Positions 1,251 through 23,258 of a stretch of 64,000 nt of DNA are shown here, piece after piece (within the stretch, counting starts at the first letter, position 1; each line of letters starts with the position of its first letter). The stretch comes from Mytilus californianus. Lineage: Eukaryota. The stretch is from positions 19,220,001 to 19,284,000 of the forward strand of contig NW_026262679.1 of NCBI RefSeq assembly GCF_021869535.1. Direction: 5' to 3'. Both the position numbers and the translations under genes were made by a program. The notes under the pieces were generated by a model. It was not told where the DNA came from. It did not search any database and worked only from the letters and a program-made list of their open reading frames with translations.

Positions 1251-1346
1251 ATCTATAGCACTATATTAGCTTTCCGTAAAATGTTTTCTTTTGAGTAGTA
1301 CTACCATAAGAAACATTTTCAATCACTTTTCATAAAAAAGTTCATA

Positions 1347-2120
1347 TTACAAGCGTATGGATCTTTTTGCATGTCGCCGTTTTTCTCCAGCGGTCCAAGA
1401 CTTTGACTTTGCCCGGAAATGACGTAAATCGGACGAGTGTTCATAATGGATCATTGGTTTGTAATTAATTGGATCGCAATACATCGACTTTTCGTTGAAA
1501 AAAGATTTGTATCCTTCATCCAGTAAATATACTTCTGGGTAGTTCAAGGCAGGATAGTTTTCTTTATTCAATTCACGATCTTTACTTCTCAGGAATCGCA
1601 TCATCTTTGGGCCTCGTTCTGATGAAAACTCACAGTGAAAAACAAGAATTTGCTTCTCTGCAGTCGACTGTTGAAGAAGTTCCAAGATGGATGCATGTAA
1701 ATACCTGTTTTCGGCACCTTCGATGTGACCTCCTTCGAATTCATACGGGTATCTGCAGTCGATGATTCGATAACTATTGATGACGTTTTTGTATCTACCG
1801 TCAATGACATCAGAAAGTGTCTGTGGAGAGATGCTTTTCAGATCCTGGTGTTTTCCTGCAACTGATGGAAGCGAGTAGGTTCTGCTGCAATCAGCAATTA
1901 AGTCTTCATTCAGTGTAAGTTTGTTGACGACAGTCTTTAAATCTCTGCAAGCTTTAACGGAATCACCCTGGTGATATTTTGTCAACGACCTCTTGGCACC
2001 AGGAGTCATAAAAGAAATAGTGTCTGCCTTTGGTTTTGTTGCTTTGAATCCAAAGGGTTCCATGTCACTAATCATCTGGTAACATTCGTCATCGTCCTGA
2101 AATAGTTGTTTAGGGAGCAT
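1347..2120 (-). CDS. cdc25: Cdc25 M-phase inducer phosphatase, intronless short form (257 aa), copy 1
   Basis: IIDCRYPYEFEGGHI, active site FHCEFSSERGP (HCx5R), YPEVYLL..GYK.FF, C-terminal FRAKSKSW; single ORF; A-rich start context ACAAAAATG. Confidence 0.97.
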   Translation of the reverse strand: MLPKQLFQDDDECYQMISDMEPFGFKATKPKADTISFMTPGAKRSLTKYHQGDSVKACRDLKTVVNKLTLNEDLIADCSRTYSLPSVAGKHQDLKSISPQTLSDVIDGRYKNVINSYRIIDCRYPYEFEGGHIEGAENRYLHASILELLQQSTAEKQILVFHCEFSSERGPKMMRFLRSKDRELNKENYPALNYPEVYLLDEGYKSFFNEKSMYCDPINYKPMIHYEHSSDLRHFRAKSKSWTAGEKRRHAKRSIRL

Positions 2121-2400
2121 TTTTGTTGTGGTAGGTTACTTCACAAAAGTCGTGATTGAATTTGACTTTTTAAGGTAAAGCACGAATATTTATGGAGAAC
2201 GAACATTTTGACAAATCATAATTTTAAAGAACCGTGTTCACTTCATTACTCAGATCATTTCAGAATTAATCACTCGTTGTCTTTTGACCATAGCTTTGAC
2301 CTCTGATTAACCTTGTCAAAGATGAAAGCGCGGCTTATCATGGTTTGTCAAGATTTTTAATTAAAGTATAAGGCAATTAAGTTCAATGTTCAGCAGAAAC
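2121..2400 (-). promoter_or_regulatory. Putative cdc25 5'UTR/proximal promoter block
   Basis: About 250 bp upstream of the ATG stay near-identical even in diverged copy 4 (23259-23520), whereas more distal flank is much more diverged. Confidence 0.55.
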
Positions 2401-3048
2401 GATGATATATTTAATGTCTGAAAAAAGTTCACTTAATTAATGATACTTTTGTGTAATAATGAAAGACTAATTCAGTTTTTATATATGAAGTATTCCCATA
2501 CAATTTTTTTTTTTATTAAAATGAATAAATAAAATGAAAAGAAAATTTAAAATAAAAGAATAAATAATACAAAATAAAGTTGAAAAAAATAGCATAAATA
2601 TAACTGCTATAAATAAAATAAAATAACACTGTTTAAATAAAACTTGTTTTAAACCTTTATAGTAATAATTTTATTTATTTTTCAATTGTAGATTCTTAAA
2701 TATATAAATTGTTTATATGTATATCCAACAACATAAATAATGGTCCACTTTTTTCCTTATACAGAAGTTTCATAATTTTTTGTTTATGCAAAAAAACTAA
2801 CTTTAGTATGTTTTAAGCGTATTAACCTGGAAATTAATTTATGGGTTTATAAACAAGTTTTCGTTTTAGTGTCGACCTTCGTTGTGCTCGTCCAATTAAA
2901 AAAAAATATGAGTTATAATTAGACAATTTCAAATTTGTCATTAGAACAAACTTCGATAAGAAACTAGGCATAATTTTACTTTTCTATTTTTTTCAGATTT
3001 AAATTTACACCCGACATTTTCCTCTTTTCTTTTGTTTGTTTTAAATAT

Positions 3049-3368
3049 AAAAATAAGGAGATGTGGTGTGATTGCCAATGAGACAACCATCCACCAAAGT
3101 TCAAATGAAGTGGATGTAAGCAATTTTAGGCAACCGTACGGCCTTCAACAATGAGAAAAAACCAATACCGTAAAGTCGGCTATAAAAGACCCTACATGAA
3201 AGAAGATGAAACAATTCAAACGAGAAAACTAACGGCCTAATTTATAACAAAATTTACGAAAAACAAATATGACGGACATGAACCAACGACAACCACTGAA
3301 CTACGGGCTCCTGACTTGGGACAGGCACATAAAGAATGTGGCGGGTTTAAACATGTTTGTGAGCGCTC
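3049..3368 (+). mobile_element. Abundant interspersed repeat (AAAATAAGGAGATGTGG...GCCAATGAGACAAC family)
   Basis: Same sequence recurs across the window (10186, 17565, 30683, fragments at 4304, 4788, 28894, 31536; reverse copies at 46.3 and 58 kb); absent at the homologous site upstream of copy 4 (~24110). Confidence 0.75.
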
Positions 3369-5681
3369 AAAATTATCTTTTTAAGTAGTCAAAAGTTGGA
3401 ATTAAACAAAAATGTCCTTTTTACAAATGATATTTATGACTCCCAAACATTGTGTAAAAGTTTTGACTTTTTCAAACAAATTTTAAAAAGTTACATACAA
3501 AAGAAATAATTACTCCATAGAAATTAATGTTGTTCTTTTGTTTCTTTTGTTGTTCAGTATATAATGTCGTGCTATATACTTGTCTTGCAGTCTTCTAAGA
3601 TCAATTCATGGACCTTTTGATAATATGGAGTATTATCTGAAATTAGAAGTACGTGTGTCCAGTGACTGTAGTAATACCTTCTTATTTTTGTAACGAGAGC
3701 ATATACACTTTTTTATACGTATAGCAACATAAGAGAGACGACCATTTAATTCTCATGGTTAAAAAAAAGGGGTGGGGTATTTGTGGATTTTTTTTCTTGG
3801 CTGGTGAAATATTCATTTTTCCTTTTGCTAGTCCGGCTTTGTTTTGATAGCAGTAACCAACATTGCTTTGAAACCTTCACCTACATGTTAGACCACATAG
3901 ATTTTACAGTGTTTTCCAACGTTGGCAGTACGTGGTACTCTTCGAACATTTGGTATTGAATTTAATGAATATCCCTATCCGATTGAATGTGATTGCGTAT
4001 AAAAGCAGATAAAAAGACGCCCTCCAGTCTTAGAATTGAAAATTCTTCCAGATAAGATAAGAAATCTCAAAATTTTGCGAAGAAGAATTCATTGATTTTG
4101 AGCAATACTCTTAAACGATTGTCTTAGTGGTCTAAATGAATTGTTTTATTTAAGGTAGTAACTCACAGTTGCCATTCTGGTTGACATTATTGAATTCAGA
4201 AACATGCGAAAAGAGAGAACTGTAGTTAGAAATGAGAAAAACATTGGGTCAAAATTATTTTTGAGCCATTATATAACAGCTTGGTCATTCCCGAACCCAT
4301 TATAAAAATAAGGAAATGTGGTATGATTGCCAATGAGACAACTATCCACCAGAGTTCAAATTATCCAAAATAAGTAATAACCATAACTTAAATTGCATGA
4401 CTATTTTCCCAAATCGGTGAAAAACTTACTATGGCACTAATTTAATTTCCCTCAAGTTACCAGTAATATATATAGCGGTTATTTAAGTAATCTCGCATCG
4501 CCAAAAACAAATGACACATGAAAAGCAAACGGTGAAGTTTTGGACAGCGGAAGCATGTTTTCTATATTGTTGTGATAAGATGTAATATTTGCCACTGAAC
4601 GTTAAACGAAATTCAACATCACCGTCATCATTGTTCTGTTATGATTCGAACGCAAATGATGAATCTTATGTAGGATAAAACACATGTCTGGGGGACTATA
4701 CAGAGATCGTCAGTCCAGTAGCATCTAGTCGAATAGTAGATATGAAGATTGTCAGTCCAGTAGCACCTAATCGGATAGTACATACATAAAATAAGGAGCA
4801 GTAGTGTGATTGCCAATAAGACAACTACAAAAGAGTCCAGATATTAAAACTAATAATAAAAACTAAAGGTACACAGTTATATACGTCACGAATGTGATAC
4901 GAAAATGAACCCTGCTTTGTGTTGAAAATATATTGAATTTGTAAATCACTTGCAATGAAATCGCTTCAAGAACTATTTTCTATATTTCCAGATTTGAAAG
5001 ACGCATGTTGATATAGTACATCTTACTTTATCGAAAAGTTTTTGATTTGTTTTCGTGACTTTTAGCCAGAAAATACCTTTTTATGTATTACATTCCTTCT
5101 ATAAAAAGAGGCAGAAGTTACCAAAGAGATAGTCGACCTCATAAGTTGAATACAAGCTGATAGCGCCATGGTAAACACGAAAAATGATGAACAGACCAAC
5201 AACTGTCTTCAAAATACAACATAGAAAAATAAATACTGAACAACACGAACCTCATCAAAATCCGGAGGTGATAACAGGTGCTCTATAAGGGTAGTCAGAT
5301 CCTCCTCCACATGTGGCACCATCGTTTTGTACAAGTTCGATGAAAAGTCTCATTCGGAGATGTTGCATACAGAAGAATGAATCCTCTAAAGAATCCATCC
5401 TACTATTTGTTTTTTTATTCTTGTATACTTTTAAACTAAAGATAGTCATAGTCACCAAAATCTGTCAAGAGAGTCTTTTATTTTGTTAAAAAAACCCATT
5501 GCAATATCGATTTTTAATCAAATACAAAGGTAACGGCATGGTTAGTAACATTATCAACCTTTACGACAGACAAAACAGCTAATCTGAAAGGTACACCATC
5601 TACTTGCCACTATACATCATGTACTGTGTTACAACCCTTGATTAAGCTGAACTGGAACTAACAAAAGCTATGTTATGTAAA

Positions 5682-5780
5682 GCCTAGTCGAGTGGTCTAT
5701 GGCGCTGGACACAGTGCAGGAGTTCGAATCCCGCTGAGGGAAGAACAAAAATTTACTAACATATTTCGGCTAAATTTGAT
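5682..5780 (+). mobile_element. tRNA-derived SINE head (internally deleted)
   Basis: A-box-like TGGTCTATGGCGCTGG and B-box GAGTTCGAATCCC; the homolog at 21516 has 21 extra nt between the boxes. Confidence 0.7.
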
Positions 5781-5884
5781 ATGAAGGATATATAAGTCAT
5801 GGTGTTTGCCCTGTATAACCACGGGATGTCCGATGGAGAACGTCTTTCGTAAATTTGTCTCATGTTTAGAAGTATATATATATG

Positions 5885-6540
5885 AAACATTTTAATCTGT
5901 ATAATTTGTCATTCTGCATTGTTTATTATACCGCGAAACTTTTTTTGTGTTTTTATTGTTTCGTTCAATTTGTTTGAAAGTGTTTGTTTGGTTTTATTAA
6001 AAAATTGAAATACTGAATAGACTTTTAGATCATTTCAAACAGATTAAGCGCATAAAGAAATACTTAACTAAATAATTCTATTAACAGAAACTTTAATAAC
6101 AAAAATATAGAAACGGATTAACAAAACATAAAACAAGTCCAATAGCGACTATTATAACATAACATTAACTATATTATATCACAGCTACTTTAATTCACAG
6201 TTACTTTGTATCACAGCTACTTTGTATCACAGTAAGTTTGAATCACAGCTTCTTTGTATCACAGTTAGTTTATATCACAGCTACTTTGTATCACAGCTAC
6301 TTTGTATCACAGTTAGTTTGCATCACAGCTACTTTGTATCACAGTTAGTTTATATCACAGCTACTTTGTATCACAGCTACTTTGTATCACAGTTACTTTG
6401 TATCACACTTTGATGTATCACAGTTAGTTCGTATCACAGTTACCTGGCATCAAAGTTACTTTGTTGTATCATAGTTAAATTTGTCATATCACAGTAAGGT
6501 TGTTGTATCACAACTTTTTATATAATATCACGGTTACTTT
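5885..6540 (-). repeat. Orphan copy of the copy-4-type cdc25 3' flank including a K-box satellite (6177-6540), with no CDS attached
   Basis: Near-identical to 21744-22370 but breaks at GGTTACTTT into a SINE fragment instead of continuing to the cdc25 stop. Confidence 0.85.
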
Positions 6541-6680
6541 GGTCTAGAGAGCTGAAAATGAGGCTAAGCGATTGGTGCTGTAGTGTATCTAAGGTGTCAG
6601 TTCAAATCCCGTTGAGGGACAAAAATTTGTAAGCATAAAAATCTAATTCTTAACACTGTTGGGTTTAATTTTCAGACTTA
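6541..6680 (+). mobile_element. 5'-truncated tRNA-derived SINE followed by (TA)n
   Basis: GGTCTAGAG...GTTCAAATCCCG...CAAAAATTTG...TAACACTGTTGGG; same family as 5682 and 25020. Confidence 0.7.
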
Positions 6681-6695
6681 TATATATATATATAT

Positions 6696-7475
6696 TGTGG
6701 CATACCATCTTTTCCACAAGTTTATTGTTTTCTGTTTGGCATTAAATTAATATTAAGATCCATTTTGTAAGATCTGGTGATCAATTTATTTGGCAATCGC
6801 CAATGGCAGTCAGCAGGGTTTAAGAACATCAGTTGTTCGACCTGTTAGTCAAATGCGTTTTGTTAAAATAGACTTTTTCACTTTTTTTGGTCTTTTGGAA
6901 ATTGTTGTTTGTGCTGTATTTAGACCCCTTTATCAAGAAATTTGTTTTACATGCACACGTATAAAAATTGCGGTTTTTATCCAACGCAATCATATGTTTG
7001 AACGTTTGCCTTCGGGTTTATATGATCCGTTCATCCTATTTCGACTCTTCAAAATTCAAGAGTCAATCCCAAATTGACGTAAATTATATGGCCTTCCAAA
7101 TACCGTTTCGATTCCTAACATCACTGAAGAGACATTAATTGTCGAAATCCGGATATGGTGTACAAATTTTTGCACCTCATGTTTGCGGTATACCATCTTT
7201 TCCGCAAGTTTTTTGTTTTCTATTTGGTATTAGATTAAAATTAAGATCCATTTTGTTACATCTGTGATCCGTTTATTTGGCAATCGCTATGGCATTCAGC
7301 AGGGTTTAAGATCATCCGTTGTTCGACCTGCTAGTCAAATGCGTTTTGTTAAAATATACTTTTTCACTTTTTTGGTCTTTCGGAAAATGTTGTTTGTGCT
7401 GTATTTAGACCCCTCTAACAAGAAATTTGTTTTGCATGTACACGTATAAAAATTGCGGTTTTTATCCAACGCAAT
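6696..7475 (+). mobile_element. Non-LTR retrozyme-like tandem repeat (~1.6 monomers of ~488 bp)
   Basis: ATACCATCTTTTCC recurs at 6702 and 7190; hammerhead at 7118-7161; flanked by TA runs on both sides. Confidence 0.8.
7118..7161 (+). ncRNA. Type I hammerhead ribozyme, intact core
   Basis: ACATCA-CTGAAGA-GACATTAATTGTC-GAAA-TCCGG-ATA/TGGTGT; predicted cleavage after 7155. Confidence 0.85.
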
Positions 7476-8126
7476 ATTATATATAATAAGCAAGTCTAAA
7501 AGGGTACATCTCCAAAAAAATAGTAAAATCATGAACAAATATTAAATATTTCGGATAACTAATATCCTTCATCAGTAAGATGTCAAATGATTCTTTTCTT
7601 GACATGTGGTAGTCGAACTGAAATAATAATCTTGAACGTCATACAAATTATCACAAATCAATACGCTGGTAATTTTTTTCAATATTGATGTTTGGATGGA
7701 GGAATAAATTGCTTAATACTATGAGAGTCCTGTACTGAAGCCTGAGTTACAGGAAACAAGTGATGGTAGGGACTCATTTTATGTTTTTTGTTATTTATCG
7801 TTGGCTATTATATGTGTGTGTGTGTGTGTGTGACATTTTAATCTGTATAATTGGTCATTCTGCGTTGTTTATCATACCGCGAAACTTTGGCCCTTTTTTT
7901 TTTGTTTCGTTCAATTTGTTTGTAAGTGTTTGTTTGGTACTATCAAAAAAAAAATACTGAATCAGACTTTCAGATCATTTCAAACAAATAAGGCCCATAA
8001 AGAAATACTGAACTAACAAATTCTATTTATAGAAACTTTAATAACAAAAATATAGAAACGGATTAACAAAACATAAACTGTAATAAAACAAGTCAATAGC
8101 GACTATTATAACATAACATTAAATCA

Positions 8127-8387
8127 TATCACAGTTACTTTGTATCACAGATAGTTGTATCACAGTTATTTTGTATCACAGTTTGTTGTATCAGTTACCA
8201 TGTTGTATCACAGTTAGTTGTATCACAGTTTCTTGTATCACAGTTACTTTGTATCACAGTTACTTTGTATCACCTTGTATCACAGGTACCTTGCATTACA
8301 GTTACTTTGTTGTATCATAGTTAAATTTAACATATCACAGTAAGGTTGTTGTATTACAATTATTTATTTATTATCACAGTTACTTTG
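8127..8387 (-). repeat. K-box satellite in the cdc25 copy 2 3' flank
   Basis: Near-identical to 990-1250. Confidence 0.9.
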
Positions 8388-8483
8388 ATCTATAGCACTA
8401 TATTAGCTTTCCGTAAAATGTTTTCTTTTGAGTAGTACTACCATAAGAAACATTTTCAATCACTTTTCATAAAAAAGTTCATA

Positions 8484-9257
8484 TTACAAGCGTATGGATC
8501 TTTTTGCATGTCGCCGTTTTTCTCCAGCGGTCCAAGACTTTGACTTTGCCCGGAAATGACGTAAATCGGACGAGTGTTCATAATGGATCATTGGTTTGTA
8601 ATTAATTGGATCGCAATACATCGACTTTTCGTTGAAAAAAGATTTGTATCCTTCATCCAGTAAATATACTTCTGGGTAGTTCAAGGCAGGATAGTTTTCT
8701 TTATTCAATTCACGATCTTTACGTCTCAGGAATCGCATCATCTTTGGGCCTCGTTCTGATGAAAACTCACAGTGAAAAACAAGAATTTGCTTCTCTGCAG
8801 TCGACTGTTGAAGAAGTTCCAAGATGGATGCATGTAAATACCTGTTTTCGGCACCTTCGATGTGACCTCCTTCGAATTCATACGGGTATCTACAGTCGAT
8901 GATTCGATAACTATTGATGACGTTTTTGTATCTACCGTCAATGACATCAGAAAGTGTCTGTGGAGAGATGCTTTTCAGATCCTGGTGTTTTCCTGAAACT
9001 GATGGAAGCGAGTAGGTTCTGCTGCAATCAGCAATTAAGTCTTCATTCAGTGTAAGTTTGTTGACGACAGTCTTTAAATCTCTGCAAGCTTTAACGGAAT
9101 CACCCTGGTGATATTTTGTCAACGACCTCTTGGCACCAGGAGTCATAAAAGAAATAGTGTCTGCCTTTGGTTTTGTTGCTTTGAATCCAAAGGGTTCCAT
9201 GTCACTAATCATCTGGTAACATTCGTCATCGTCCTGAAATAGTTGTTTAGGGAGCAT
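8484..9257 (-). CDS. cdc25: Cdc25 phosphatase, intronless short form (257 aa), copy 2
   Basis: Same motifs; differs from copy 1 by two residues (VAGK>VSGK, LRSK>LRRK). Confidence 0.97.
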   Translation of the reverse strand: MLPKQLFQDDDECYQMISDMEPFGFKATKPKADTISFMTPGAKRSLTKYHQGDSVKACRDLKTVVNKLTLNEDLIADCSRTYSLPSVSGKHQDLKSISPQTLSDVIDGRYKNVINSYRIIDCRYPYEFEGGHIEGAENRYLHASILELLQQSTAEKQILVFHCEFSSERGPKMMRFLRRKDRELNKENYPALNYPEVYLLDEGYKSFFNEKSMYCDPINYKPMIHYEHSSDLRHFRAKSKSWTAGEKRRHAKRSIRL

Positions 9258-10185
9258 TTTTGTTGTGGTAGGTTACTTCACAAAAGTCGTGATTGAATTT
9301 GACTTTCTAAGGTAAAGCACGAATATTTATGGAGAACGAACATTTTGACAAATCATAATTTTAAAGAACCGTGTTCACTTCATTACTCAGATCATTTCAG
9401 AATTAATCACTCGTTGTCTTTTGACCATAGCTTTGACCTCTGATTAACCTTGTCAAAGATGAAAGCGCGGCTTATCATGGTTTGTCAAGATTTTTAATTA
9501 AAGTATAAGGCAATTAAGTTCAATGTTCAGCAGAAACGATGATATATTTAATGTCTGAAAAAAGTTCACTTAATTAATGATACTTTTGTGTAATAATGAA
9601 AGACTAATTCAGTTTTTATATATGAAGTATTCCCATACAATTTTTTTTTTATTAAAATGAATAAATAAAATGAAAAGAAAATTTAAAATAAAAGAATAAA
9701 TAATACAAAATAAAGTTGAAAAAAATAGCATATATATAACTGCTATAAATAAAATAAAATAACACTGTTTAAATAAAACTTGTTTTAAACCTTTATAGTA
9801 ATAATTTTATTTATTTTTCAATTGTAGATTCTTAAATATATAAATTGTTTATATGTATATCCAACAACATAAATAATGGTCCACTTTTTTCCTTATACAG
9901 AAGTTTCATAATTTTTTGTTTATGCAAAAAAACTAACTTTAGTATGTTTTAAGCGTATTAACCTGGAAATTAATTTATGGGTTTATAAACAAGTTTTCGT
10001 TTTAGTGTCGACCTTCGTTGTGCTCGTCCAATTAAAAAAAAAATATGAGTTATAATTAGACAATTTCAAATTTGTCATTAGAACAAACTTCGATAAGAAA
10101 CTAGGCATAATTTTACTTTTCTATTTTTTTCAGATTTAAATTTACACCCGACATTTTCCTCTTTTCTTTTGTTTGTTTTAAATAT

Positions 10186-10505: not shown

Positions 10506-12993
10506 AAAATTATCTTTTTAAGTAGTCAAAAGTTGGAATTAAACAAAAATGTCCTTTTTACAAATGATATTTATGACTCCCAAACATTGTGTAAAAGTTT
10601 TGACTTTTTCAAACAAATTTTAAAAAGTTACATACAAAAGAAATAATTACTCCATAGAAATTAATGTTGTTCTTTTGTTTCTTTTGTTGTTCAGTATATA
10701 ATGTCGTGCTATATACTTGTCTTGCAGTCTTCTAAGATCAATTCATGGACCTTTTGATAATATGGAGTATTATCTGAAATTAGAAGTACGTGTGTCCAGT
10801 GACTGTAGTAATACCTTCTTATTTTTGTAACGAGAGTATATACACTTTTTTATACGTATAGCAACATAAGAGAGACGACCATTTAATTCTCATGGTTAAA
10901 AAAAAGGGGTGGGGTATTTGTGGATTTTTTTTCTTGGCTGGTGAAATATTCATTTTTCGTTTTACTAGTCCGGCTTTGTTTTGATAGCAGTAACCAACAT
11001 TGCTTTGAAACCTTCACCTACATGTTAGACCACATAGATTTTACAGTGTTTTCCAACGTTGGCAGTACGTGGTACTCTTCGAACATTTGGTATTGAATTT
11101 AATGAATATCCCTATCCGATTGAATGTGATTGCGTATAAAAGCAGATAAAAAGACGCCCTCCAGTCTTAGAATTGAAAATTCTTCCAGATAAGATAAGAA
11201 ATCTCAAAATTTTGCGAAGAAGAATTCATTGATTTTGAGCAATACTCTTAAACGATTGTCTTAGTGGTCTAAATGAATTGTTTTATTTAAGGTAGTAACT
11301 CACAGTTGCCATTCTGGTTGACATTATTGAATTCAGAAACATGCGAAAAGAGAGAACTGTAGTTAGAAATGAGAAAAACATTGGGTCAAAATTATTTTTG
11401 AGCCATTATATAACAGTTTGGTCATTCCCGAACCCATTATAAAAATAAGGAAATGTGGTATGATTGCCAATGAGACAACTATCCACCAGAGTTCAAATTC
11501 TGTTGCATGACTATTTTCCCAAATCGGTGAAAAACTTACTATGGCACTAATTTAATTTCCCTCAAGTTACCAGTAAATATATAGCGGTTATTTAAGTAAT
11601 CTCGCATCGCCAAAAACAAATGACACATGAAAAGCAAACGGTGAAGTTTTGGACAGCGGAAGCATGTTTTCTATATTGTTGTGATAAGATGTAATATTTG
11701 CCACTGAACGTTAAACGAAATTCAACATCACCGTCATCATTGTTCTGTTATGATTCGAACGCAAATGATGAATCTTATGTAGGATAAAACACATGTCTGG
11801 GGGACTATACGGAGATCGTCAGTCCAGTAGCATCTAGTCGAATAGTAGATATGAAGATTGTCAGTCCAGTAGCACCTAATCGGATAGTACATACATAAAA
11901 TAAGGAGCAGTAGTGTGATTGCCAATAAGACAACTACAAAAGAGTCCAGATATTAAAACTAATAATAAAAACTAAAGGTACACAGTTATATACGTCACGA
12001 ATGTGATACGAAAATGAACCCTGCTTTGTGTTGAAAATATATTGAATTTGTAAATCACTTGCAATGAAATCGCTTCAAGAACTATTTTCTATATTTCCAG
12101 ATTTGAAAGACGCATGTTGATATAGTACATCTTACTTTATCGAAAAGTTTTTGATTTGTTTTCGTGACTTTTAGCCAGAAAATACCTTTTTATGTATTAC
12201 ATTCCTTCAGTAAAAAGAGGCAGAAGTTACCAAAGAGATAGTCGACCTCATAAGTTGAATACAAGCTGATAGCGCCATGGTAAACACGAAAAATGATGAA
12301 CAGACCAAGAACTGTCTTCAAAACACAACATAGAAAAATAAATACTGAACAACACGAACCTCATCAAAATCCGGGGGTGATAACAGGTGCTCTATAAGGG
12401 TAGTCAGATCCTCCTCCACATGTGGCACCATCGTTTTGTACAAGTTCGATGAAAAGTCTCATTCGGAGATGTTGCATACAGAAGAATGAATCCTCTAAAG
12501 AATCCATCCTACTATTTGTTTTTTTATTCTTGTATACTTTTAAACTAAAGATAGTCATAGTCACCAAAATCTGTCAAGAGAGTCTTTTATTTTGTTAAAA
12601 AAACCCATTGCAATATCGATTTTTAATCAAATACAAAGGTAACGGCATGGTTAGTAACATTATCAACCTTTACGACAGACAAAACAGCTAATCTGAAAGG
12701 TACACCATCTACTTGCCACTATACATCATGTACTGTGTTACAACCCTTGATTAAGCTGAACTGGAACTAACAAAAGCTATGTTATGTAAAGCCTAGTCGA
12801 GTGGTCTATGGCGCTGGACACAGTGCAGGAGTTCGAATCCCGCTGAGGGAAGAACAAAAATTTACTAACATATTTCGGCTAAATTTGATATGAAGGATAT
12901 ATAAGTCATGGTGTTTGCCCTGTATAACCACGGGATGTCCGATGGAGAACGTCTTTCGTAAATTTGTCTCATGTTTAGAAGTATATATATATG

Positions 12994-13633
12994 AAACATT
13001 TTAATCTGTATAATTTGTCATTCTGCATTGTTTATTATACCGCGAAACTTTTTTTGTGTTTTTATTGTTTCGTTCAATTTGTTTGAAAGTGTTTGTTTGG
13101 TTTTATCAAAAAATTGAAATACTGAATAGACTTTTAGATCATTTCAAACAGATTAAGCGCATAAAGAAATACTTAACTAAATAATTCTATTAACAGAAAC
13201 TTTAATAACAAAAATATAGAAACGGATTAACAAAACATAAAACAAGTCCAATAGCGACTATTATAACATAACATTAACTATATTATATCACAGCTACTTT
13301 AATTCACAGTTACTTTGTATCACAGCTACTTTGTATCACAGTAAGTTTGAATCACAGCTTCTTTGTATCACATTTAGTTTATATCACAGCTACTTTGTAT
13401 CACAGTTAGTTTGCATCACAGCTACTTTGTATCACAGTTAGTTTATATCACAGCTACTTTGTATCACAGCTACTTTGTATCACAGTTACTTTGTATCACA
13501 CTTTGATGTATCACAGTTAGTTCGTATCACAGTTACCTGGCATCAAAGTTACTTTGTTGTATCATAGTTAAATTTGTCATATCACAGTAAGGTTGTTGTA
13601 TCACAACTTTTTATATAATATCACGGTTACTTT
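12994..13633 (-). repeat. Second orphan copy-4-type 3' flank with K-box satellite (13286-13633)
   Basis: Same breakpoint into a SINE (GGTTACTTT|GGTCTAGAG) as at 6540. Confidence 0.85.
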
Positions 13634-13790: not shown

Positions 13791-14570
13791 TGTGGCATAC
13801 CATCTTTTCCACAAGTTTATTGTTTTCTGTTTGGCATTAAATTAATATTAAGATCCATTTTGTAAGATCTGGTGATCAATTTATTTGGCAATCGCCAATG
13901 GCAGTCAGCAGGGTTTAAGAACATCAGTTGTTCGACCTGTTAGTCAAATGCGTTTTGTTAAAATAGACTTTTTCACTTTTTTTGGTCTTTTGGAAATTGT
14001 TGTTTGTGCTGTATTTAGACCCCTTTATCAAGAAATTTGTTTTACATGCACACGTATAAAAATTGCGGTTTTTATCCAACGCAATCATAGGTTTGAACGT
14101 TTGCCTTCGGGTTTATATGATCCGTTCATCCTATTTCGACTCTTCAAAATTCAAGAGTCAATCCCAAATTGACGTAAATTATATGGCCTTCCAAATACCG
14201 TTTCGATTCCTAACATCACTGAAGAGACATTAATTGTCGAAATCCGGATATGGTGTACAAATTTTTGCACCTCATGTTTGCGGTATACCATCTTTTCCGC
14301 AAGTTTTTTGTTTTCTATTTGGTATTAGATTAAAATTAAGATCCATTTTGTTACATCTGTGATCCGTTTATTTGGCAATCGCTATGGCAGTCAGCAGGGT
14401 TTAAGATCATCCGTTGTTCGACCTGCTAGTCAAATGCGTTTTGTTAAAATATACTTTTTCACTTTTTTGGTCTTTCGGAAAATGTTGTTTGTGCTGTATT
14501 TAGACCCCTCTAACAAGAGATTTGTTTTGCATGTACACGTATAAAAATTGCGGTTTTTATCCAACGCAAT
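13791..14570 (+). mobile_element. Non-LTR retrozyme-like tandem repeat
   Basis: Copy of 6696-7475 at offset 7095. Confidence 0.8.
14213..14256 (+). ncRNA. Type I hammerhead ribozyme, intact core
   Basis: Identical to 7118-7161. Confidence 0.85.
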
Positions 14571-15227
14571 ATTATATATAATAAGCAAGTCTAAAAGGGT
14601 ACATCTCCAAAAAAATAGTAAAATCATGAACAAATATCAAATATTTCGGATAACTAATATCTTTCATCAGTAAGATGTCAAATGATTCTTTTCTTGACAT
14701 GTGGTAGTCGAACTGAAATAATAATCTTGAACGTCATACAAATTATCACAAATCAATACGCTGGTAATTTTTTTCAATATTGATGTTTGGATGGAGGAAT
14801 AAATTCCTTAATACTATGAGAGTCCTGTACTGAAGCCTGAGTTACAGGAAACAAGTGATGGTAGGGATTCATTTTATGTTTTTTGTTATTTATCGTTGGC
14901 TATTATATATGTGTGTGTGTGTGTGTGTGACATTTTAATCTGTATAATTGGTCATTCTGCGTTGTTTATCATACCGCGAAACTTTGGCCCTTTTTTTTTT
15001 GTTTCGTTCAATTTGTTTGTAAGTGTTTGTTTGGTTCTATCAAAAATAAAAGAAAGACTGAATCAGACTTTCAGATCATTTCAAACAAATAAGGCCCATA
15101 AAGAAATACTGAACTAAAAAATTCTATTTATAGAAACTTTAATAACAAAAATATAGAAACGGATTAACAAAACATAAACTGTAATAAAACAAGTCAATAG
15201 CGACTATTATAACACAACATTAAATCA

Positions 15228-15759
15228 TATCACAGCTATTTTGTATCACAGTTTGTTGTATCAGTTACCATGTTGTATCACAGTTAGTTGAATCACAGTT
15301 AGTTGTATCACAGTTAGTTGTATCACAGTTACTTTGTATCACAGTTTGTTGTATCACAGTTAGTTGTATCACAGTTACTTTGTATCACAGTTACCTTGTA
15401 TCACCTTGTATCACAGGTACCTTGCATTACAGTTACTTTGTTGTATCATAGTTAAATTTAACATAGTCACAGTAAGGTTGTTGTATCACAATTATTTATT
15501 TAATATCACAGTTACTTTGTATCACCTTGTATCACAGGTACCTTGCATTACAGTTACTTTGTTGTATCATAGTTAAATTTAACATATCACAGTAAGGTTG
15601 TTGTATCACAATTATTTATTTAATATCACAGTTACTTTGTATCACCTTGTATCACAGGTACCTTGCATTACAGTTACTTTGTTGTATCATAGTTAAATTT
15701 AACATATCACAGTAAGGTTGTTGTATTACAATTATTTATTTAATATCACAGTTACTTTG
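15228..15759 (-). repeat. Expanded K-box satellite in the cdc25 copy 3 3' flank, with a ~120-bp higher-order triplication
   Basis: 17 perfect TATCACAG counted by eye; TCACCTTGTATCACAGGTACC recurs at 15401, 15522 and 15642. Confidence 0.9.
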
Positions 15760-15856
15760 ATCTATAGCACTATATTAGCTTTCCGTAAAATGTTTTCTTT
15801 TGAGTAGTACTACCATAAGAAACATTTTCAATCACTTTTCATAAAAAAAGTTCATA

Positions 15857-16630
15857 TTACAAGCGTATGGATCTTTTTGCATGTCGCCGTTTTTCTCCAG
15901 CGGTCCAAGACTTTGACTTTGCCCGGAAATGACGTAAATCGGACGAGTGTTCATAATGGATCATTGGTTTGTAATTAATTGGATCGCAATACATCGACTT
16001 TTCGTTGAAAAAAGATTTGTATCCTTCATCCAGTAAATATACTTCTGGGTAGTTCAAGGCAGGATAGTTTTCTTTATTCAATTCACGATCTTTACTTCTC
16101 AGGAATCGCATCATCTTTGGGCCTCGTTCTGATGAAAACTCACAGTGAAAAACAAGAATTTGCTTCTCTGCAGTCGACTGTTGAAGAAGTTCCAAGATGG
16201 ATGCATGTAAATACCTGTTTTCGGCACCTTCGATGTGACCTCCTTCGAATTCATACGGGTATCTGCAGTCGATGATTCGATAACTATTGATGACGTTTTT
16301 GTATCTACCGTCAATGACATCAGAAAGTGTCTGTGGAGAGATGCTTTTCAGATCCTGGTGTTTTCCTGCAACTGATGGAAGCGAGTAGGTTCTGCTGCAA
16401 TCAGCAATTAAGTCTTCATTCAGTGTAAGTTTGTTGACGACAGTCTTTAAATCTCTGCAAGCTTTAACGGAATCACCCTGGTGATATTTTGTCAACGACC
16501 TCTTGGCACCAGGAGTCATAAAAGAAATAGTGTCTGCCTTTGGTTTTGTTGCTTTGAATTCAAAGGGTTCCATGTCACTAATCATCTGGTAACATTCGTC
16601 ATCGTCCTGAAATAGTTGTTTAGGGAGCAT
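15857..16630 (-). CDS. cdc25: Cdc25 phosphatase, intronless short form (257 aa), copy 3
   Basis: Same motifs; one residue differs from copy 1 (PFGF>PFEF). Confidence 0.97.
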   Translation of the reverse strand: MLPKQLFQDDDECYQMISDMEPFEFKATKPKADTISFMTPGAKRSLTKYHQGDSVKACRDLKTVVNKLTLNEDLIADCSRTYSLPSVAGKHQDLKSISPQTLSDVIDGRYKNVINSYRIIDCRYPYEFEGGHIEGAENRYLHASILELLQQSTAEKQILVFHCEFSSERGPKMMRFLRSKDRELNKENYPALNYPEVYLLDEGYKSFFNEKSMYCDPINYKPMIHYEHSSDLRHFRAKSKSWTAGEKRRHAKRSIRL

Positions 16631-17564
16631 TATTGTTGTGGTAGTTTACTTCACAAAAGTCGTGATTGAATTTGACTTTTTAAGGTAAAGCACGAATATT
16701 TATGGAGAACGGACATTTTGACAAATCACAATTTCAAAGAACCGTGTTCACTTCATTACTCAGATCATTTCAGAATTAATCACTCGTTGTCTTTTGACCA
16801 TAGCTTTGACCTCTGATTAACCTTGTCAAAGATGAAAGCGCGGCTTATCATGGTTTGTCAAGATTTTTAATTAAAGTATAAGGCAATTAAGTTCAATGTT
16901 CAGCAGAAACGATGATATATTTAATGTCTGAAAAAAGTTCACTTAATTAATGATACTTTTGTGTAATAATGAAAGACTAATTCAGTTTTTATATATGAAA
17001 TATTCCCATACAATTTTTTTTTTATTAAAATGAATAAAGAAAATGAAAAGAAAATTTAAAATAAAAGAATAAATAATACAAAATAAAGTTGAAAAAAATA
17101 GCATAAATATAACTGCTATAAATAAAATAAAATAACACCATTTAAATAAAACTTGTTTTAAACCTTTATAGTAATACTTTTATTTATTTTTCAATTGTAG
17201 ATTCTTAAATACATAAATTGTTTATATATGTATATTCAACAACATAAATAATGGTCCACTTTTTTCCTTATACAGAAGTTTCATATTTTTTTGTTGTATG
17301 CAAAAAAACTAACTTTAGTATGTTTTAAGCGTATTAACCTGGAAATCAATTTATGGGTTTATAAACAAGTTTTCGTTTTAATGTCGACCTTCGTTGTGCT
17401 CGTCCAATTTAAAAAAAAAAGAGTTATAATTAGACAATTTCAAATTTGTCATTAGAACAAACTTCGATAAGAAACTAGGCATAATTTTACTTTTCTATTT
17501 TTTCAGGATTAAATTTACACCCGACATTTTCCTCTTTTCTTTTGTTTGTTTTAAATACATGTAT

Positions 17565-17888
17565 AAAAATAAGGAGATGTGGTGTGATTACCAATGAGAC
17601 AACCATCCACCAAAGTTCAAATGAAGTGGATGTAAGCAATTATAGGCAACCGTAGTGGCTTCCAACAACTGAGAAAAAACCCATACCGTATAGTCGGCTA
17701 TAAAAGGCCCTACATGAAAGAAGGTGAAACAATTCAAACGAGAAAACTAACGGCCTAATTTATAACAAAACTATTTACGAAAAACAAATATGACGGACAT
17801 GAACCAACGACAACCACTGAACTACAGGCTCCTGACTTGGGACAGGCACATAAAGAATGTGGCGGGGTTAAACATGTTTGTGAGCGCT
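17565..17888 (+). mobile_element. Interspersed repeat, homolog of 3049-3368
   Basis: Same family and position, more diverged than units 1 and 2. Confidence 0.75.
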
Positions 17889-19489
17889 CAAAATTATCCT
17901 TTTAAGTAGTCAAAAGTTGGAATTAAACAAAAATGTCCTTTTTACAAATGATATTTATGACTCCCAAACATTGTGTAAAAGTTTTGACTTTTTCAAACAA
18001 ATTTTAAAAAGTTACATACAAAAGAAATAATTACTCCATAGAAATTAATGTTGTTCTTTTGTTTCTTTTGTTGTTCAGTATATAATGTCGTGCTATATAC
18101 TTGTCTTGCAGTCTTCTAAGATTAATTCATGGACCTTTTGATAATATGGAGTATTATCTGAAATTAGAATCACGTGTGTCCAGTGACTGTAGTAATACCT
18201 TCTTATTTTTACAACGAGAGTATATACACTTTTTATACGTATAGCACATAAGAATGACGACCATTTAATTCTCATGGTTAATAAAAGGGGGTGGGGTATT
18301 TGTGGATTTTTTTTCTTGGCTGGTGAAATATTAATTTTTCCTTTTGCTAGTCCGGCTTTGTTTTGATAGCAGTAACCAACATTGCTTTGAAACCTTGACC
18401 TACATGTTAGACCACATAGATTTTACAGGGTTTTCCAACGTTGGCAGTACGTGGTACTCTCCGAACATTTGGTATTGAATTTAATGAGTATCCCTATCCG
18501 ATTGAATGTGATTGCGTATAAAAGCAGCTAAAAAGACGCCCTCCAGTTTTAGAATTGAAAATTCTTCCAGATAAGATAAGAAATCTCAAAATTTTGCGAA
18601 GTAGAATTCATTGATATTGGGCAGTACTTTTAAACGATTGTCATAGTGGTCTAAATGAATTGTTTTATTCAAGGAAGTAACTCACAGTTGCCATTCTGGT
18701 TGACAAACCATTATTGAATTCAGAAACATGCGAAAAAAGAGAACTGTAGTTAGAAATGAGAAAAACATTGGGTCAAAATTATTTTTGAGCGATTATATAA
18801 CAGCTTGGTCATTCCCGAACTCATTCATGATAAAAATAAGGAGATGTGGTATGATTGCCAATGAGACAACTATCCACCAGAGTTCAAATTATCCAAAATA
18901 TGAATACCCATAACTTATATTGCATGACTATTTTCCCAGATCGGTGAAAAACTTACTATGGCACTAATTTAATTTCCCTCAAGTTACCAGTATATATATA
19001 TAGCGGTTATTTAAGTAATCTCGCATCGCCAAAAACAAATGACACATGAAAAGAAAACGGTGAAGTTTGGGTTAGCAGAAGCATGTTTCTATATTGTCTT
19101 GATAAGTATGTAATATTTGCCACTGGACGTTAAACGAAATTCAACATCACCGTCATCATTTTTCTGTTATGATTCGAACGCAAATGATGAATCTTATGTA
19201 GGATAAAACACATGTCTGGGTGACTATACGGAGATCGTCAGTCCAGTAGCATCTAGTCGAATAGTAGATATGAAGATTATCAGTCCAGTAGCACCTAATC
19301 GGATAGTACATACATAAAATAAGGAGCAGTAGTGTGATTGCCAATAAGACACTTACACAAAAGTCAAAATGACAAAATTTATAATAAAAACTAATGGTAC
19401 ACAGCTCCCTCACAAGTAAAAACCCATAACTGTAAAATATTAAAGCATACTGATGTTTTTGGTGGAGACATTACCACGTGTTTAAAAAT

Positions 19490-20587
19490 AAATCGTCAGA
19501 GGTTCCGCGGAAACCTGTGTCTCGCCTGCGATTGCTGCTGTCAGTGTAAAAGTGTTATGTTGACCTAAAACGTGAGTCCATTTATCAGTAAAATACAGAA
19601 TAAAAAAAAAAATCAAACCTTTTCTTTAGATGCTATTTTGGCCTTGACGATGAGCTTTTATGCAAGTTTCATAACAATCCATGGAGGTTTACAAATTTAT
19701 CATGTACATAAAATTTAATCCCAGACTGTCTGTAAATGTTAACTGTAAAAAATGAAGTCCATCCTTCAGAAAAATACTACAAATGAAAAAAATATATTTT
19801 CAAAGGTTTGCTTCAGACATTATCTCTTAATCATTAAATAGCTACTGCCAAAGTTTCATAAAACTCTATGAAGGTTTGACAAAGTAATTGATGTGTAACA
19901 AACTTTAACCCCAGACTGTATCTACTTGTTAACTGTAAAAAAAACAAGTCCATTTTTCAGTAAAATACGGAAAACTGAAAATAAATATTTCCAAAATGTT
20001 GCTCTGGATACTATATTTTGGTTATAAACAAGCTTCAGTCCAAATTTCATAAATTTCCATGAAGCTTTGACAAAGTTATTGAAGACTAAAAAACTTTAAC
20101 CTCAGACTGAGTCTGAGTGTAAACTGTAAAAAAAGTCTATTTATCAGTAAAATACGATAAAATGAAAATAAATGTTTTCGAAATTTTGCTCTGGATACTG
20201 TCTTTTGGTCATAAACAAGCTTCTGTACAAATTTTATAAAACTCCATGAAGGTTTGACAAAGTTGTTGATGACTGAAAAACTTTAACCTCAGACAAAATC
20301 TGAAGTTAACTGTAAAAAAAACAAACAAAGTCCATTTATTATTAAAATACGGAAAAATGAAAATAGATATTTTCAAAATTTTGCCCTGGATACAGTAGTT
20401 TGGTCATAAACAAGCTTCTGTCCCAATTTCATAAAATTCCATGTAGGTTTGACAAAGTTATTGATGTCCAGAAAAACTTTAACCACAGACTGAACTTAAA
20501 TGTTGACGCCGCCGACACCGACGACAACGGAATCTAGGATCGCTTTGTCTCGCTTTTGCAAAATAAATTTCGCAGGCTCGACAAAAA
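19490..20587 (+). mobile_element. HINE-type (Helentron-associated) non-autonomous element with ~190-bp internal tandem repeats
   Basis: Subterminal inverted repeat GTCTCGCCTGCGA (19519) / TCGCAGGCTCGAC (20570); AACTGTAAAA recurs at 19741, 19931, 20122, 20308; GACGCC/GACACC microsatellite before a 3' hairpin. Confidence 0.65.
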
Positions 20588-21515
20588 TTGTTTCTGTTGA
20601 AGGGTTGTCTTAGAAACAGATATCTGCACGCGTTGTATTTTACCAACTATATAATAATTCTTCTTCGATCTAATTTAAACTATAAATAGAGGAAGATTTG
20701 GTATATACGTCACGAATGTGATACGAAAATGAACCCTGCTTTGTGTTGAAAATATATTGAATTTGTAAATCACTTGCAATGAATCGCTTCATGAATTATT
20801 TTCTATATTTCCAGATTTGAAAGACGCATGTTGATATAGTACATCTTACTTTATCGAAAAGTTTTTGATTTGTTTTCGTGACTTTTAGCCAGAAAATACC
20901 GTTTTATGTATTACATTCCATCTATAAAAAAAAGGCAGAAGTTACCAAAGAGATAGTCGACCTCATAAGTCGAATACAAGCTGATAGCGCCATGGTAAAC
21001 ACGAAAAATGATGAAAAGACCAACAACTGTCTTCAAAACACAACATAGAAAAATAAATTCTGAACAACACGAACCTCATCAAAATCCGGAGGTGATCACA
21101 GGTGCTCTATAAGGGTAGTCAGATCCTTCTCCACATGTGGCACCATCGTTTTGCACATGTAAGTACAAGTTCGATGAAAAGTCTCATTCTGAGATGTTGC
21201 ATACAGAAGAATGAATCCTCTAAAGCATCCATCCTACTATTTGTTTTTTAGTCTTGCATACTTTTAAACTAAAGATAGTCATAGTCACCAAAATCTTTCA
21301 AGAGAGTCTTTTATTTTTTTTAAAAAAAAACATTGTATTATCGATTTTTAATCAAATACAAAGGTAACGGCATGGTTAGTAACATTATCAACCTTTACGT
21401 CAGACAAAACAGCTAATCTGAAAGGTACACCATCTACTTGCCACTATACATCATGTACTGTGTTACAACCCTTGATTAAGCTGAACAGGAACTATCAAAA
21501 GCTATGTCATGTAAA

Positions 21516-21635
21516 GCCGAGTCGAGTGGTCTATGGCGCTGGACACAGTGCAGGCAGTGATGTCACAGAAGCAGGAGTTCGAATCCCGCTGAGGGAAGAA
21601 CAAAAATTTGCTAACATATTTCGGCTAAATTTGAT
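21516..21635 (+). mobile_element. tRNA-derived SINE head
   Basis: A box TGGTCTATGGCGCTGG and B box GAGTTCGAATCCC. Confidence 0.7.
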
Positions 21636-22035
21636 ATGAAGGATATATAAGTCATGGTGTTTGCCCTGTATAACCACGGGTTGTCCGATGGAGAACGTCT
21701 TTCGTAAATTTGTCTCATGTTTAGAAGTATATATATATATATGAAACATTTTAATCTGTATAATTTGTCATTCTGCATTGTTTATTATACCGCGAAACCT
21801 TTTTGTGTTTTTATTGTTTCGTTCAATTTGTTTGAAAGTGTTTGTTTGGTTTTATTAAAAAATTGAAATACTGAATCAGACTTTTAGATCATTTTAAACA
21901 GATTAAGCGCATAAAGAAATACTTAACTAAATAATTCTATTAACAGAAACTTTAATAACAAAAATATAGAAACGGATTAACAAAACATAAAACAAGTCCA
22001 ATAGCGACTATTATAGCATAACATTAACTATATTA

Positions 22036-22367
22036 TATCACAGTTACTTTATATCACAGTTACTTTGTATCACAGCTACTTTGTATCACAGTAAGTTTGT
22101 ATCACAGCTACTTTGTATCACAGTTAGTTTATATCACAGCTACTTTGTATCACAGTTAGTTTGCATCACAGCTACTTTGTATCACAGTTAGTTTATATCA
22201 CAGCTACTTTGTATCACAGTTACTTTGTATCACACTTTGATGCATCACAGTTACTTTGTATCACAGTTACCTGGCATCAAAGTTACTTTGTTGTATGATA
22301 GTTAAATTTGTCATATCACAGTAAGGTTGTTGTATCACAACTTTTTATATAATATCAAAGTTACTTT
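22036..22367 (-). repeat. K-box satellite in the cdc25 copy 4 3' flank
   Basis: 13 perfect TATCACAG counted by eye plus several 7-mers; unit mostly TATCACAG(C/T)TACTTTG. Confidence 0.9.
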
Positions 22368-22454
22368 ATGGCACTATATTAGCTTTCAATATTTTCTTCT
22401 GAGTAGCACTATCACAAGAAATATATTCAATAACTTTTCATAAGAAAGTTCATA

Positions 22455-23258
22455 TTACAAGCGTATGGATCTTTTTGCATGTCGCTGTTTTTCTCCAGCG
22501 GTCCAAGACTTTGACTTTGCCCGGAAATGACGTAAATCGGACGAGTGTTCAGAATGGATCATCGGTTTATAACTAATAGGATCGCAATACATCGCCTTTT
22601 CGTTGAAAAATGATTTGTACCCTTCATCCAGTAAATATACTTCTGGGTAGTTCAAAGTAGGATAGTTTTCTTTATTCAAGTCACGATCTTTACTTCTCAA
22701 GAAACGCATCATCTTTGGGCCTCGTTCTGATGAAAACTCACAGTGAAAAACGAGAATTTGCTTCTCTGTAGTCGGCTGTTGAAGAAGTTCCAAAATGGAT
22801 GCATGTAAATACCTGTTTTCGGCACCTTCGATGTGACCTCCTTCAAATTCATATGGGTATCTGCAATCGATGATTCGATAACTATTGATGAAGTTTTTGT
22901 ATCTACCGTCAATGACATCAGAAAGTGTCTGTGGAGAGATGCTTTTCAGATCCTGGTGTTTTCCTGCGACTGTCGGAAGCGAGTAGGTGCTGCTACAATC
23001 AGCAATCAAGTCGTCATTCAGTGTAAGTTTGTTGACGACAGTCTTTAAATCTCTGCAAGGTTTGTTTTGCTTGTCGACGGCAGATGGTGATTTAACGGAA
23101 TCACCCTGGTGACATTTTGTTTTCGACATCTGTGCATCAGAAGTCATAAAAGACATAGTGTCTGCTTTTTGTTTTGTTGCTTCTAATCCAAAGGGTTCCA
23201 TACAACTAATCATTTGGTAACATTCGCCATCGTCCCGAAATAGTTGTTTAGGGAGCAT
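22455..23258 (-). CDS. cdc25: Cdc25 phosphatase, intronless short form (267 aa), diverged copy 4
   Basis: Active site intact; ~25 substitutions plus a 10-aa in-frame indel versus copies 1-3, concentrated N-terminally. Confidence 0.97.
   Translation of the reverse strand: MLPKQLFRDDGECYQMISCMEPFGLEATKQKADTMSFMTSDAQMSKTKCHQGDSVKSPSAVDKQNKPCRDLKTVVNKLTLNDDLIADCSSTYSLPTVAGKHQDLKSISPQTLSDVIDGRYKNFINSYRIIDCRYPYEFEGGHIEGAENRYLHASILELLQQPTTEKQILVFHCEFSSERGPKMMRFLRSKDRDLNKENYPTLNYPEVYLLDEGYKSFFNEKAMYCDPISYKPMIHSEHSSDLRHFRAKSKSWTAGEKQRHAKRSIRL

Follow-up and report, generated by a model that had tools for sequence, protein, structure and literature searches.

Tandem intronless Cdc25 genes in the mussel Mytilus californianus as likely descendants of an old retrogene from a short, multi-exon parent

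Cdc25 is normally a low-copy gene whose product is under heavy post-translational control. The question raised here is how a stretch of 64,000 nucleotides from the mussel Mytilus californianus (the window, C99:19,220,001-19,284,000 in genome coordinates) came to carry four short and uninterrupted reading frames for Cdc25-like proteins one after another, what made these genes short, and whether they are still functional. A first-pass annotation of this DNA had proposed that they are N-terminally truncated retrocopies of the canonical, long Cdc25 gene, amplified afterwards. Our results point to an answer which differs from this proposal in an important part: the four open reading frames (ORFs) are likely functional, DNA-duplicated descendants of an old retrogene, and this retrogene would have come from a Cdc25 gene which had several exons and was already short.

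Four Cdc25 reading frames without introns

The four ORFs lie on the minus strand at 1347-2120, 8484-9257 and 15857-16630 (copies 1, 2 and 3, each of 257 amino acids) and at 22455-23258 (copy 4, 267 amino acids). All four contain the sequence HCEFSSERG and the C-terminal motif KSKSW. The sole domain detected by Pfam is Rhodanese (residues 115-208, E = 1.8e-11), while residues 71-250 match the human structures of CDC25A (8roz) and CDC25B (1cwr) end to end (E ~1e-53). In the alignment with these structures HCEFSSERGP and the RF[LI]R..DR segment are intact, KSKSW is aligned to human KSRTW, and 70-74 residues precede the catalytic domain. The four uninterrupted frames, the estimate of some 70-80 residues before the catalytic region and the retained C-terminal motif, all read from the letters alone in the first-pass annotation, are confirmed by this. 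No Pfam match to the regulatory domain PF06617 was obtained for the window proteins. The ORFs would encode a complete Cdc25 catalytic domain, with removal of inhibitory phosphates from CDK1 as the predicted activity. A TAA codon is present in frame five codons 5' of each ATG, with no AG between them. In the phylogenetic tree the window proteins nest in a mollusc Cdc25 clade, beside long forms of bivalves, cephalopods, a brachiopod and an annelid.

The genes are parts of a tandem segmental duplication which spans 583-23860 with a period of ~7.14 kb, as established from self-BLAST, the ORF list and a comparison with Mytilus coruscus and with a paralog situated outside the window at C99:19.128 Mb. 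Self-BLAST gives 98% identity between units 1 and 2 over 7.8 kb, with ~96% for unit 3 and ~90% for unit 4. With respect to copy 1, synonymous divergence (dS) is 0.006 for copy 2 and 0.16 for copy 4, with a ratio of nonsynonymous to synonymous divergence (dN/dS) of 0.30 in the latter, and copy 3 shows no synonymous differences at all. Ten residues (SPSAVDKQNK) which are present in copy 4 are deleted from copies 1-3. Beyond a block of ~2.1 kb around each ORF the unit consists of repeats, without a further credible ORF.

A six-frame search of the genome gave 73 Cdc25 matches, ~25 of which are uninterrupted ORFs, and the resulting inventory comprises one canonical Cdc25 gene, ~8 short multi-exon paralogs and ~25 intronless copies. 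Five of the uninterrupted ORFs are found at C99:19.13-19.24 Mb (the window copies and the one at 19.128 Mb). C1 has another five, C87 has four within a 10-kb tandem array and C121 has ~10, and C132 is also among the contigs with intronless copies beside C1 and C87. Several of these copies have a sequence identical to that of M. californianus RefSeq proteins. Nine loci of the same genome match exon by exon, with catalytic-domain introns after query residues ~102, ~134 and ~173 and between ~208 and ~214. All catalytic-domain introns common to these nine paralogs are absent from the window ORFs. Intronless Cdc25 was seen only in mytilid sequences.

The short parent and the origin of the retrogene

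A homology search collected more than 1,300 proteins, and the trees were rooted on arthropods. Long forms which bear PF06617 are present in M. galloprovincialis (612 amino acids), Tegillarca (582), Ylistrum (573) and cephalopods, and the canonical gene of M. californianus (L024, C99:10.75 Mb), a multi-exon gene and ortholog of the 612-residue protein, groups with them. Short proteins of 260-380 amino acids, named 'M-phase inducer phosphatase-like', are found in mussels, scallops, ark shells, clams, oysters, abalone, limpets and a chiton. These short forms make up a clade separate from the long ones, with a Shimodaira-Hasegawa-like approximate likelihood ratio test (SH-aLRT) value of 91 in one tree and 100/90 in the careful maximum likelihood tree, where the chiton row has no resolved place. 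A short Cdc25 is thus widespread in molluscs next to a long canonical gene, but it is multi-exon wherever it was checked: Pecten has ~7 coding exons, Mya four, Mercenaria five, and the Haliotis gene is also multi-exon. The short genes of Mya additionally form a tandem array with a period of ~6.5 kb. Because the short forms have a clade of their own, are multi-exon in other molluscs and are arrayed in Mya, both shortness and tandem arrays are ancestral in the mollusc short clade.

The careful maximum likelihood tree unites all intronless genes of what we call clade A, i.e. the window family, a family of 291 amino acids on C1 and C87, a family at C1:114.7 Mb, and sequences from ENA and Logan, with one multi-exon gene, L021/P0056, in a single clade (ultrafast bootstrap 99, SH-aLRT 92). 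L021, situated at C99:48.56 Mb, is the only multi-exon gene in this clade and is the ortholog of M. galloprovincialis P0056, a protein of 282 amino acids; the multi-exon L029/P0036 is sister to L021 and the intronless clade. P0056 is encoded by six coding exons across 18.5 kb, and the window ORFs run continuously through all of its exon junctions. Exon 1 of the candidate parent was not found within the 10-kb L021 locus of M. californianus, and in M. galloprovincialis it is located 13.7 kb upstream of exon 2. L021 and the intronless copies at C99:19.1-19.2 Mb, C1, C87 and C132 occupy different loci. Because all parental introns are absent together and the copies are spread over several chromosomes, retroposition followed by DNA duplication is supported as their probable mode of origin. 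The first-pass annotation is upheld in this respect by the lack of introns where nine paralogs have them, by the multi-exon relative at 99/92 and by the local DNA duplication, and the intron-containing parent which it had expected has a good candidate in L021, reached through the six-frame search and the tree. The bivalve phylogeny agrees with the retrogene origin it had proposed, but not with a long Cdc25 as the parent, for the window genes belong to the short clade. Since the likely parent, a member of the mollusc-wide short clade, is itself only 282 amino acids long, shortness does not seem to have been caused by retrocopying.

The N-terminus leads to a similar view. Parent and sister families share a plan of M..[KR][RQ]LF, TP..KRS, D(E)DSGLG(M/L)D and basic KRxR/KRxK patches, which are followed by the catalytic domain. 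We presume that [KR][RQ]LF, DSG and the basic patches, which resemble the RRLLF cyclin-docking motif, the DSG beta-TrCP degron and the nuclear localization signal (NLS) of human CDC25A, are their counterparts. The window family keeps MLPKQLF, whose KQLF resembles a cyclin-docking motif, and the TP/KRS region. It has lost the DSG block and the first basic patch by deletion, as well as, in copies 1-3, the 10 residues mentioned above. In the alignment the parent and sister families start with a segment homologous to MLPKQLF, and residues are missing only further in, so that the N-terminus was reduced by internal deletion and not cut at its 5' end. The truncation assumed by the first-pass annotation is not borne out by this alignment. 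The loss of N-terminal control sites which it had also assumed is seen in comparison with the relatives, where the degron-like DSG motif and the basic patches are preserved, but not its attribution to the retrocopying step.

Two observations concern the other intronless families. One of them, on C121 at ~41.38-52.89 Mb (L018-L020, L033-L039), has ~10 copies with mostly intact ORFs of 311-337 amino acids which start with MDC; it keeps DEDSGLGMDF, is without K-box arrays (described below) and falls outside the window clade in the tree. A single origin of clade A and this C121 clade B was marginally rejected by the approximately unbiased test (p = 0.040), with a long branch involved. Because the C121 family is found elsewhere in the tree and its joint placement was marginally rejected, it is probably the product of an independent second retroposition. 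The other observation is a copy in the 291-residue array (L014, C87:1197441-1198046) which has HCEFLSERG in place of HCEFSSERG, a serine to leucine change in the active-site loop.

Age, selection and alternative explanations

Single-exon orthologs are present in four other Mytilus species, among them M. coruscus, M. trossulus and M. edulis. In M. coruscus two of them are placed 6,956 bp apart, in a cluster which has three consecutive accessions. The pair has its ortholog in the 19.128 Mb copy (dS 0.056), from whose lineage the window copies split earlier (dS 0.21-0.27). The oldest copy in the window is copy 4, at dS 0.16 from the other three, which hardly differ among themselves (dS <= 0.006). 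In the annotated proteomes of other Mytilus, no ortholog of the window copies was found to exceed 82-87% identity. Because there are single-exon orthologs in other Mytilus and ~25 intronless copies on several chromosomes, the retroposition appears to be an old and family-wide event, not one specific for this locus. The dN/dS ratio is 0.25-0.31 overall, 0.13-0.18 in the catalytic domain and 0.55-0.79 in the N-terminus, from which it is clear that the catalytic domain is under purifying selection and that the N-terminal tail is relaxed.

Several results speak against functional genes of retroposed origin and have to be weighed here. The RNA run X4, of which ~6% was sampled and for which the tissue is unspecified, gave no reads on 700-2899; its reads over 700-6699 are confined to high-copy repeats at 2900-3500 and 4300-4500. 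No run on record as RNA contained the stretch, and probably-RNA runs labelled with the window species contained next to none of its sequence words; runs X1-X3, which cover every bin, are DNA and not RNA. As no expression was detected, selection is the only evidence of function. The sequence of the 19.128 Mb paralog is represented at 5-29% in many small probably-RNA runs of other organisms, which is suggestive only and was not taken as evidence of expression. The flanks evolve at the synonymous rate and show no sign of a constrained promoter. A TATA-like ATAAATAT is situated at 2186-2193 on the minus strand, 66-73 nt 5' of the ATG, is identical in copy 4, the 19.128 Mb paralog and M. coruscus, and is a putative core promoter. 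To the eye the 5' flank is strikingly conserved, but its identity (0.85-0.89) equals that of third codon positions (0.85), and promoter constraint is therefore not claimed. In the tree L021/P0056 stands in a polytomy with the intronless lineages and has a long branch (0.64), which is compatible with one or several retropositions. Finally, neither a poly(A) remnant nor a target-site duplication could be identified at the window genes, as expected for an old insertion; the conserved block ends in an A-rich tract near 755-790, which is not diagnostic of a poly(A) remnant.

Could the copies then be silent, decaying retro-pseudogenes whose ORFs have escaped disruption only because they were duplicated recently? 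The missing RNA reads, the very low divergence of copies 1-3 and the pseudogene fragments found in the same cluster at C99:19.134 and 19.207 Mb are in accordance with this. However, intact ORFs are also seen in four other species and between paralogs as far apart as dS 0.16-0.27, no catalytic motif has been lost, the catalytic domain has the low dN/dS given above, and the partial presence of the 19.128 Mb paralog in probably-RNA runs points weakly in the same direction; silent copies are therefore very unlikely. It is still harder to sustain that the genes are truncated retrocopies of the canonical long Cdc25 which lost the regulatory domain in the retrocopying step at this locus. They are indeed intronless and far shorter than the canonical gene with its 612-residue ortholog, but L024 belongs to a clade apart from all short forms, the nearest intron-bearing relative is a short gene, the MLPKQLF start has aligned counterparts in the parent and sister families (MPVKRLF and MLSRRLF), which indicates an intact 5' end, and short forms of other molluscs are multi-exon. 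These alignments and trees contradict a canonical parent, and we regard it as extremely improbable. A somewhat better case, although an unlikely one too, can be made for the view that the window genes are not single-exon and start ~2 kb upstream, with a MAT exon spliced into codon 9 and replacing MLPKQLFQ. RefSeq models copies 1-3 (P0158 family for copy 1) as proteins of 252 amino acids which begin with MAT|DDDE (XP_052098725, -726 and -727) from a 3-codon mini-exon 2.05 kb upstream. This putative start exon, ATGGCAACT followed by GT, is located at 4167-4175 on the minus strand and repeated at 11304-11312 and 18686-18694, i.e. once per unit in units 1-3 versus 0.16 expected, and the splice acceptor needed at codon 9, tttcag|GAC, exists. 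On the other hand, the acceptor AG is a substitution of copies 1-3 only, with CGG in copy 4, the 19.128 Mb paralog and M. coruscus, while MLPKQLF is invariant in copies 1-4, that paralog and M. coruscus. The RefSeq models (P0158, P0161, P0164, P0003) moreover disagree with each other: copy 4 is given as 233 amino acids from M35, and the 19.128 Mb copy as 265 amino acids over the full ORF, the sole model among the cluster copies which uses the MLPKQLF start. Essentially no reads of the sampled part of X4 fall on the mini-exon, and the catalytic region is uninterrupted in every gene model, the MAT model included. The MAT exon is doubtful and in any case not ancestral.

The K-box minisatellite and the proposed history

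The window genes are followed by a 16-nt minisatellite with the sense-strand unit CAAAGTAACTGTGATA, which contains the K-box 8-mer CTGTGATA. On the minus strand, as the genes, the arrays are located at 990-1242 for copy 1 (11 K-boxes, 104-349 nt past the stop), 8127-8379 for copy 2 (11 K-boxes), 15228-15751 for copy 3 (17 K-boxes in the span, 15 of them within 600 nt of the stop) and 22036-22321 for copy 4 (13 K-boxes). Two distal arrays on the same strand are situated in unit 1 at 6177-6494 (14 K-boxes, with the variant unit CAAAGTAGCTGTGATA, ~2 kb downstream of copy 2) and in unit 2 at 13286-13587 (12 K-boxes). The array at 6177-6494 shares homology with the 3' flanks of copy 4 and the M. 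coruscus gene, and is probably what remains of the 3' flank of a gene copy since lost. The window contains 79 K-boxes versus 2.3 expected, every one of them on the gene strand and 78 inside an array; 11-15 are found within 600 nt of the stop of each window gene, and the coding sequences have none. All 82 genome-wide matches to the repeat dimer fall within C99:19.129-19.242 Mb (reversed control, 0), so that within the genome the minisatellite is private to the Cdc25 cluster. Three orphan K-box arrays ~3.15 kb apart (C99:19211734-19218262), left of the window and without an adjoining Cdc25 ORF, resemble the distal arrays and may be relics of deleted gene copies.

The first-pass annotation had spoken of a 3' microRNA (miRNA) array which may replace lost control. 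The array is not composed of miRNA genes: no miRNA, hammerhead ribozyme or other family was matched in the units by Rfam (gathering scores over 1-30000, E <= 1 over 1-8500), and on both strands shuffled versions fold better than the repeat itself (z = +2.1), which is thus unstructured. The link to miRNA control stands in another form, as target motifs for miR-2. The mir-2 genes of M. californianus are found elsewhere, five hairpins in a cluster at C121:33359017-33359969 and one at C143:111344239-111344304, all above the Rfam cut-off, and their mature product is mostly UAUCACAGCCAGCUUUGAUGAGC, with two variants in addition. The repeat unit pairs with miR-2 nucleotides 1-8 and 13-17. Orthologs carry 8 K-boxes in M. 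coruscus, 18 in M. edulis (from +56) and 23 in M. trossulus (from +49), which gives 8-23 intact 8-mers per gene in the nine genes examined from five species. A lone K-box stands at +43 in the candidate parent L021, the M. galloprovincialis ortholog has one at +50 with the same sequence around it, and the first K-box is also found at +39 to +55 in the 291-residue family (four of five copies), the ENA contigs and the Logan contig. The offset after the stop is thus alike in the parent and the sister retrogene families, a possible trace of the parental untranslated region (UTR), the rest of which is too diverged to align. Where the stop was located in the other multi-exon paralogs, which are six, the following 1 kb is free of K-boxes. 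The simplest reading of these positions is that an ancestral miR-2 site of the parental 3'UTR was carried with the retrocopy and later expanded by slippage. The array may lie inside the 3'UTR.

It is quite possible, if somewhat short of an even chance, that the minisatellite is a neutral local repeat without a regulatory role, situated outside the mRNA or matching miR-2 by chance expansion of a 16-mer. Minisatellites grow by slippage without selection, block duplication copies an array trivially along with the gene, and the cluster contains orphan arrays without an ORF. Two findings count here against a regulatory array as such: an AATAAA follows the first K-box in copies 1-3, so that the array may lie outside the mRNA, and conservation at the K-box positions of the unit barely exceeds that at its remaining positions (0.93 vs 0.86). 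A neutral repeat is less easily reconciled with a seed motif older than the array, present as a single conserved K-box at the same offset in the parent and sister families, with the persistence of intact 8-mers in nine of nine genes, with the additional pairing to miR-2 nucleotides 13-17, and with the unstructured nature of the array.

We propose the following history for the retrogene, which takes gene structures, phylogeny, purifying selection and motif arrays directly from the data. Before the divergence of the five Mytilus species sampled, the processed mRNA of a short multi-exon Cdc25 paralog, for which the gene at C99:48.56 Mb is the best candidate, would have been reverse-transcribed and inserted into the genome. 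The intronless gene would then have spread by further duplication to several chromosomes. One lineage would have come to rest at C99:19.13-19.24 Mb and multiplied there as tandem units of ~7 kb. This lineage lost the degron-like DSG motif and the basic NLS-like patches which the parent and sister families kept, while the single inherited miR-2 (K-box) motif, ~40-55 nt past the stop, would have expanded into the 16-nt minisatellite with 8-23 motifs per gene. It is tempting to suppose that the lineage in this way moved control from the protein to the mRNA, shedding the DSG and NLS-like patches and growing a single miR-2 site into 8-23 seed-plus-supplementary sites. We put this shift to the miRNA level forward only tentatively and consider it rather unlikely as it stands.

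Two more features of the window deserve mention. The tandem array of genes is adjoined by an ORF of 623 amino acids on the plus strand (25816-27687) with an RVT_1 reverse-transcriptase domain (E = 3e-36), probably a retrotransposon pol fragment, i.e. of the enzyme type that produces retrocopies. The repeats at 2900-3500 and 4300-4500 are present in extremely high copy number, with a summed contig depth of 1e5-1e6 versus ~50 in the flanks in the DNA runs, and they are joined directly in many contigs.

Relation to known systems and significance

With canonical metazoan Cdc25, such as human CDC25A, B and C or the mussel's own L024, the window genes share the rhodanese-fold catalytic domain, the HCX5R signature and the C-terminal KSKSW/KSRTW tail. 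They differ in having ~70-74 instead of more than 350 residues before the catalytic domain, in lacking PF06617 and introns, in being multi-copy and in belonging to a separate clade. The short Cdc25-like genes of molluscs (260-380 amino acids) are of the same clade, have the same compact N-terminal plan ([KR]xLF start, TP..KRS) and are often tandem, but those checked have 4-7 coding exons, and several aligned short forms (Mytilus, Argopecten) keep DEDSGLGMD, which the window genes have lost together with the basic patches. The closest comparison is offered by the 291-residue intronless family of the C1 and C87 arrays, of the same retrogene clade, single-exon, tandem and with a K-box ~40 nt past the stop; it keeps DSG and the KRxR/KRxK patches and has one or two K-boxes, while the window family has lost the former and has 8-23 of the latter. 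Retroposition followed by tandem duplication is a known expansion route in bivalves (PMC6896357), described in lophotrochozoans for, e.g., nicotinic acetylcholine receptors, which is the same expansion mode in another gene family. In the literature searched we found no paper on a Cdc25 retrogene, nor on mollusc Cdc25 expansion beyond a passing remark (PMC4254928).

The downstream arrays have their closest parallel in the K-box/miR-2 3'UTRs of Drosophila genes such as grim, sickle and E(spl)-C (PMC1043860, PMC4238352), in which the sense-strand CUGUGAUA is likewise complementary to the 5' end of the miR-2 family and there is miR-2-specific 3' pairing. Drosophila 3'UTRs have one or two K-boxes (grim one, sickle two; PMC1043860), in contrast to the 8-23 putative sites derived from a 16-nt minisatellite here. 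Drosophila twine is a possible analogy only, as an extra Cdc25 paralog dedicated to the germline; it is not a retrogene and is not orthologous to the window genes. Six CDC25 or CDC25-like probes were found up in spawned oocytes of a clam, and seven CDC25 genes were mentioned in C. gigas (PMC4254928). By analogy, a germline or early-embryo role may be envisaged for the window genes.

The RefSeq entries of these genes are already named 'M-phase inducer phosphatase-like', and our analysis suggests that their inconsistent 5' ends should be revised. That shortness would be older than retroposition corrects an easy misreading of such loci. The window family is the most reduced form, a natural 'minimal Cdc25' composed of a docking-like motif and the catalytic domain. 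The kind of gene is ordinary, and it is the locus-private arrays of miR-2 motifs which are most worth experiment, as a testable case of a minisatellite creating multivalent miRNA regulation. If the proposed shift of control were true, Mytilus would possess a stable minimal activator of CDK1. The number of gene copies would set its dose, and miR-2 would remove it, for instance in gametes or during the maternal-to-zygotic transition.

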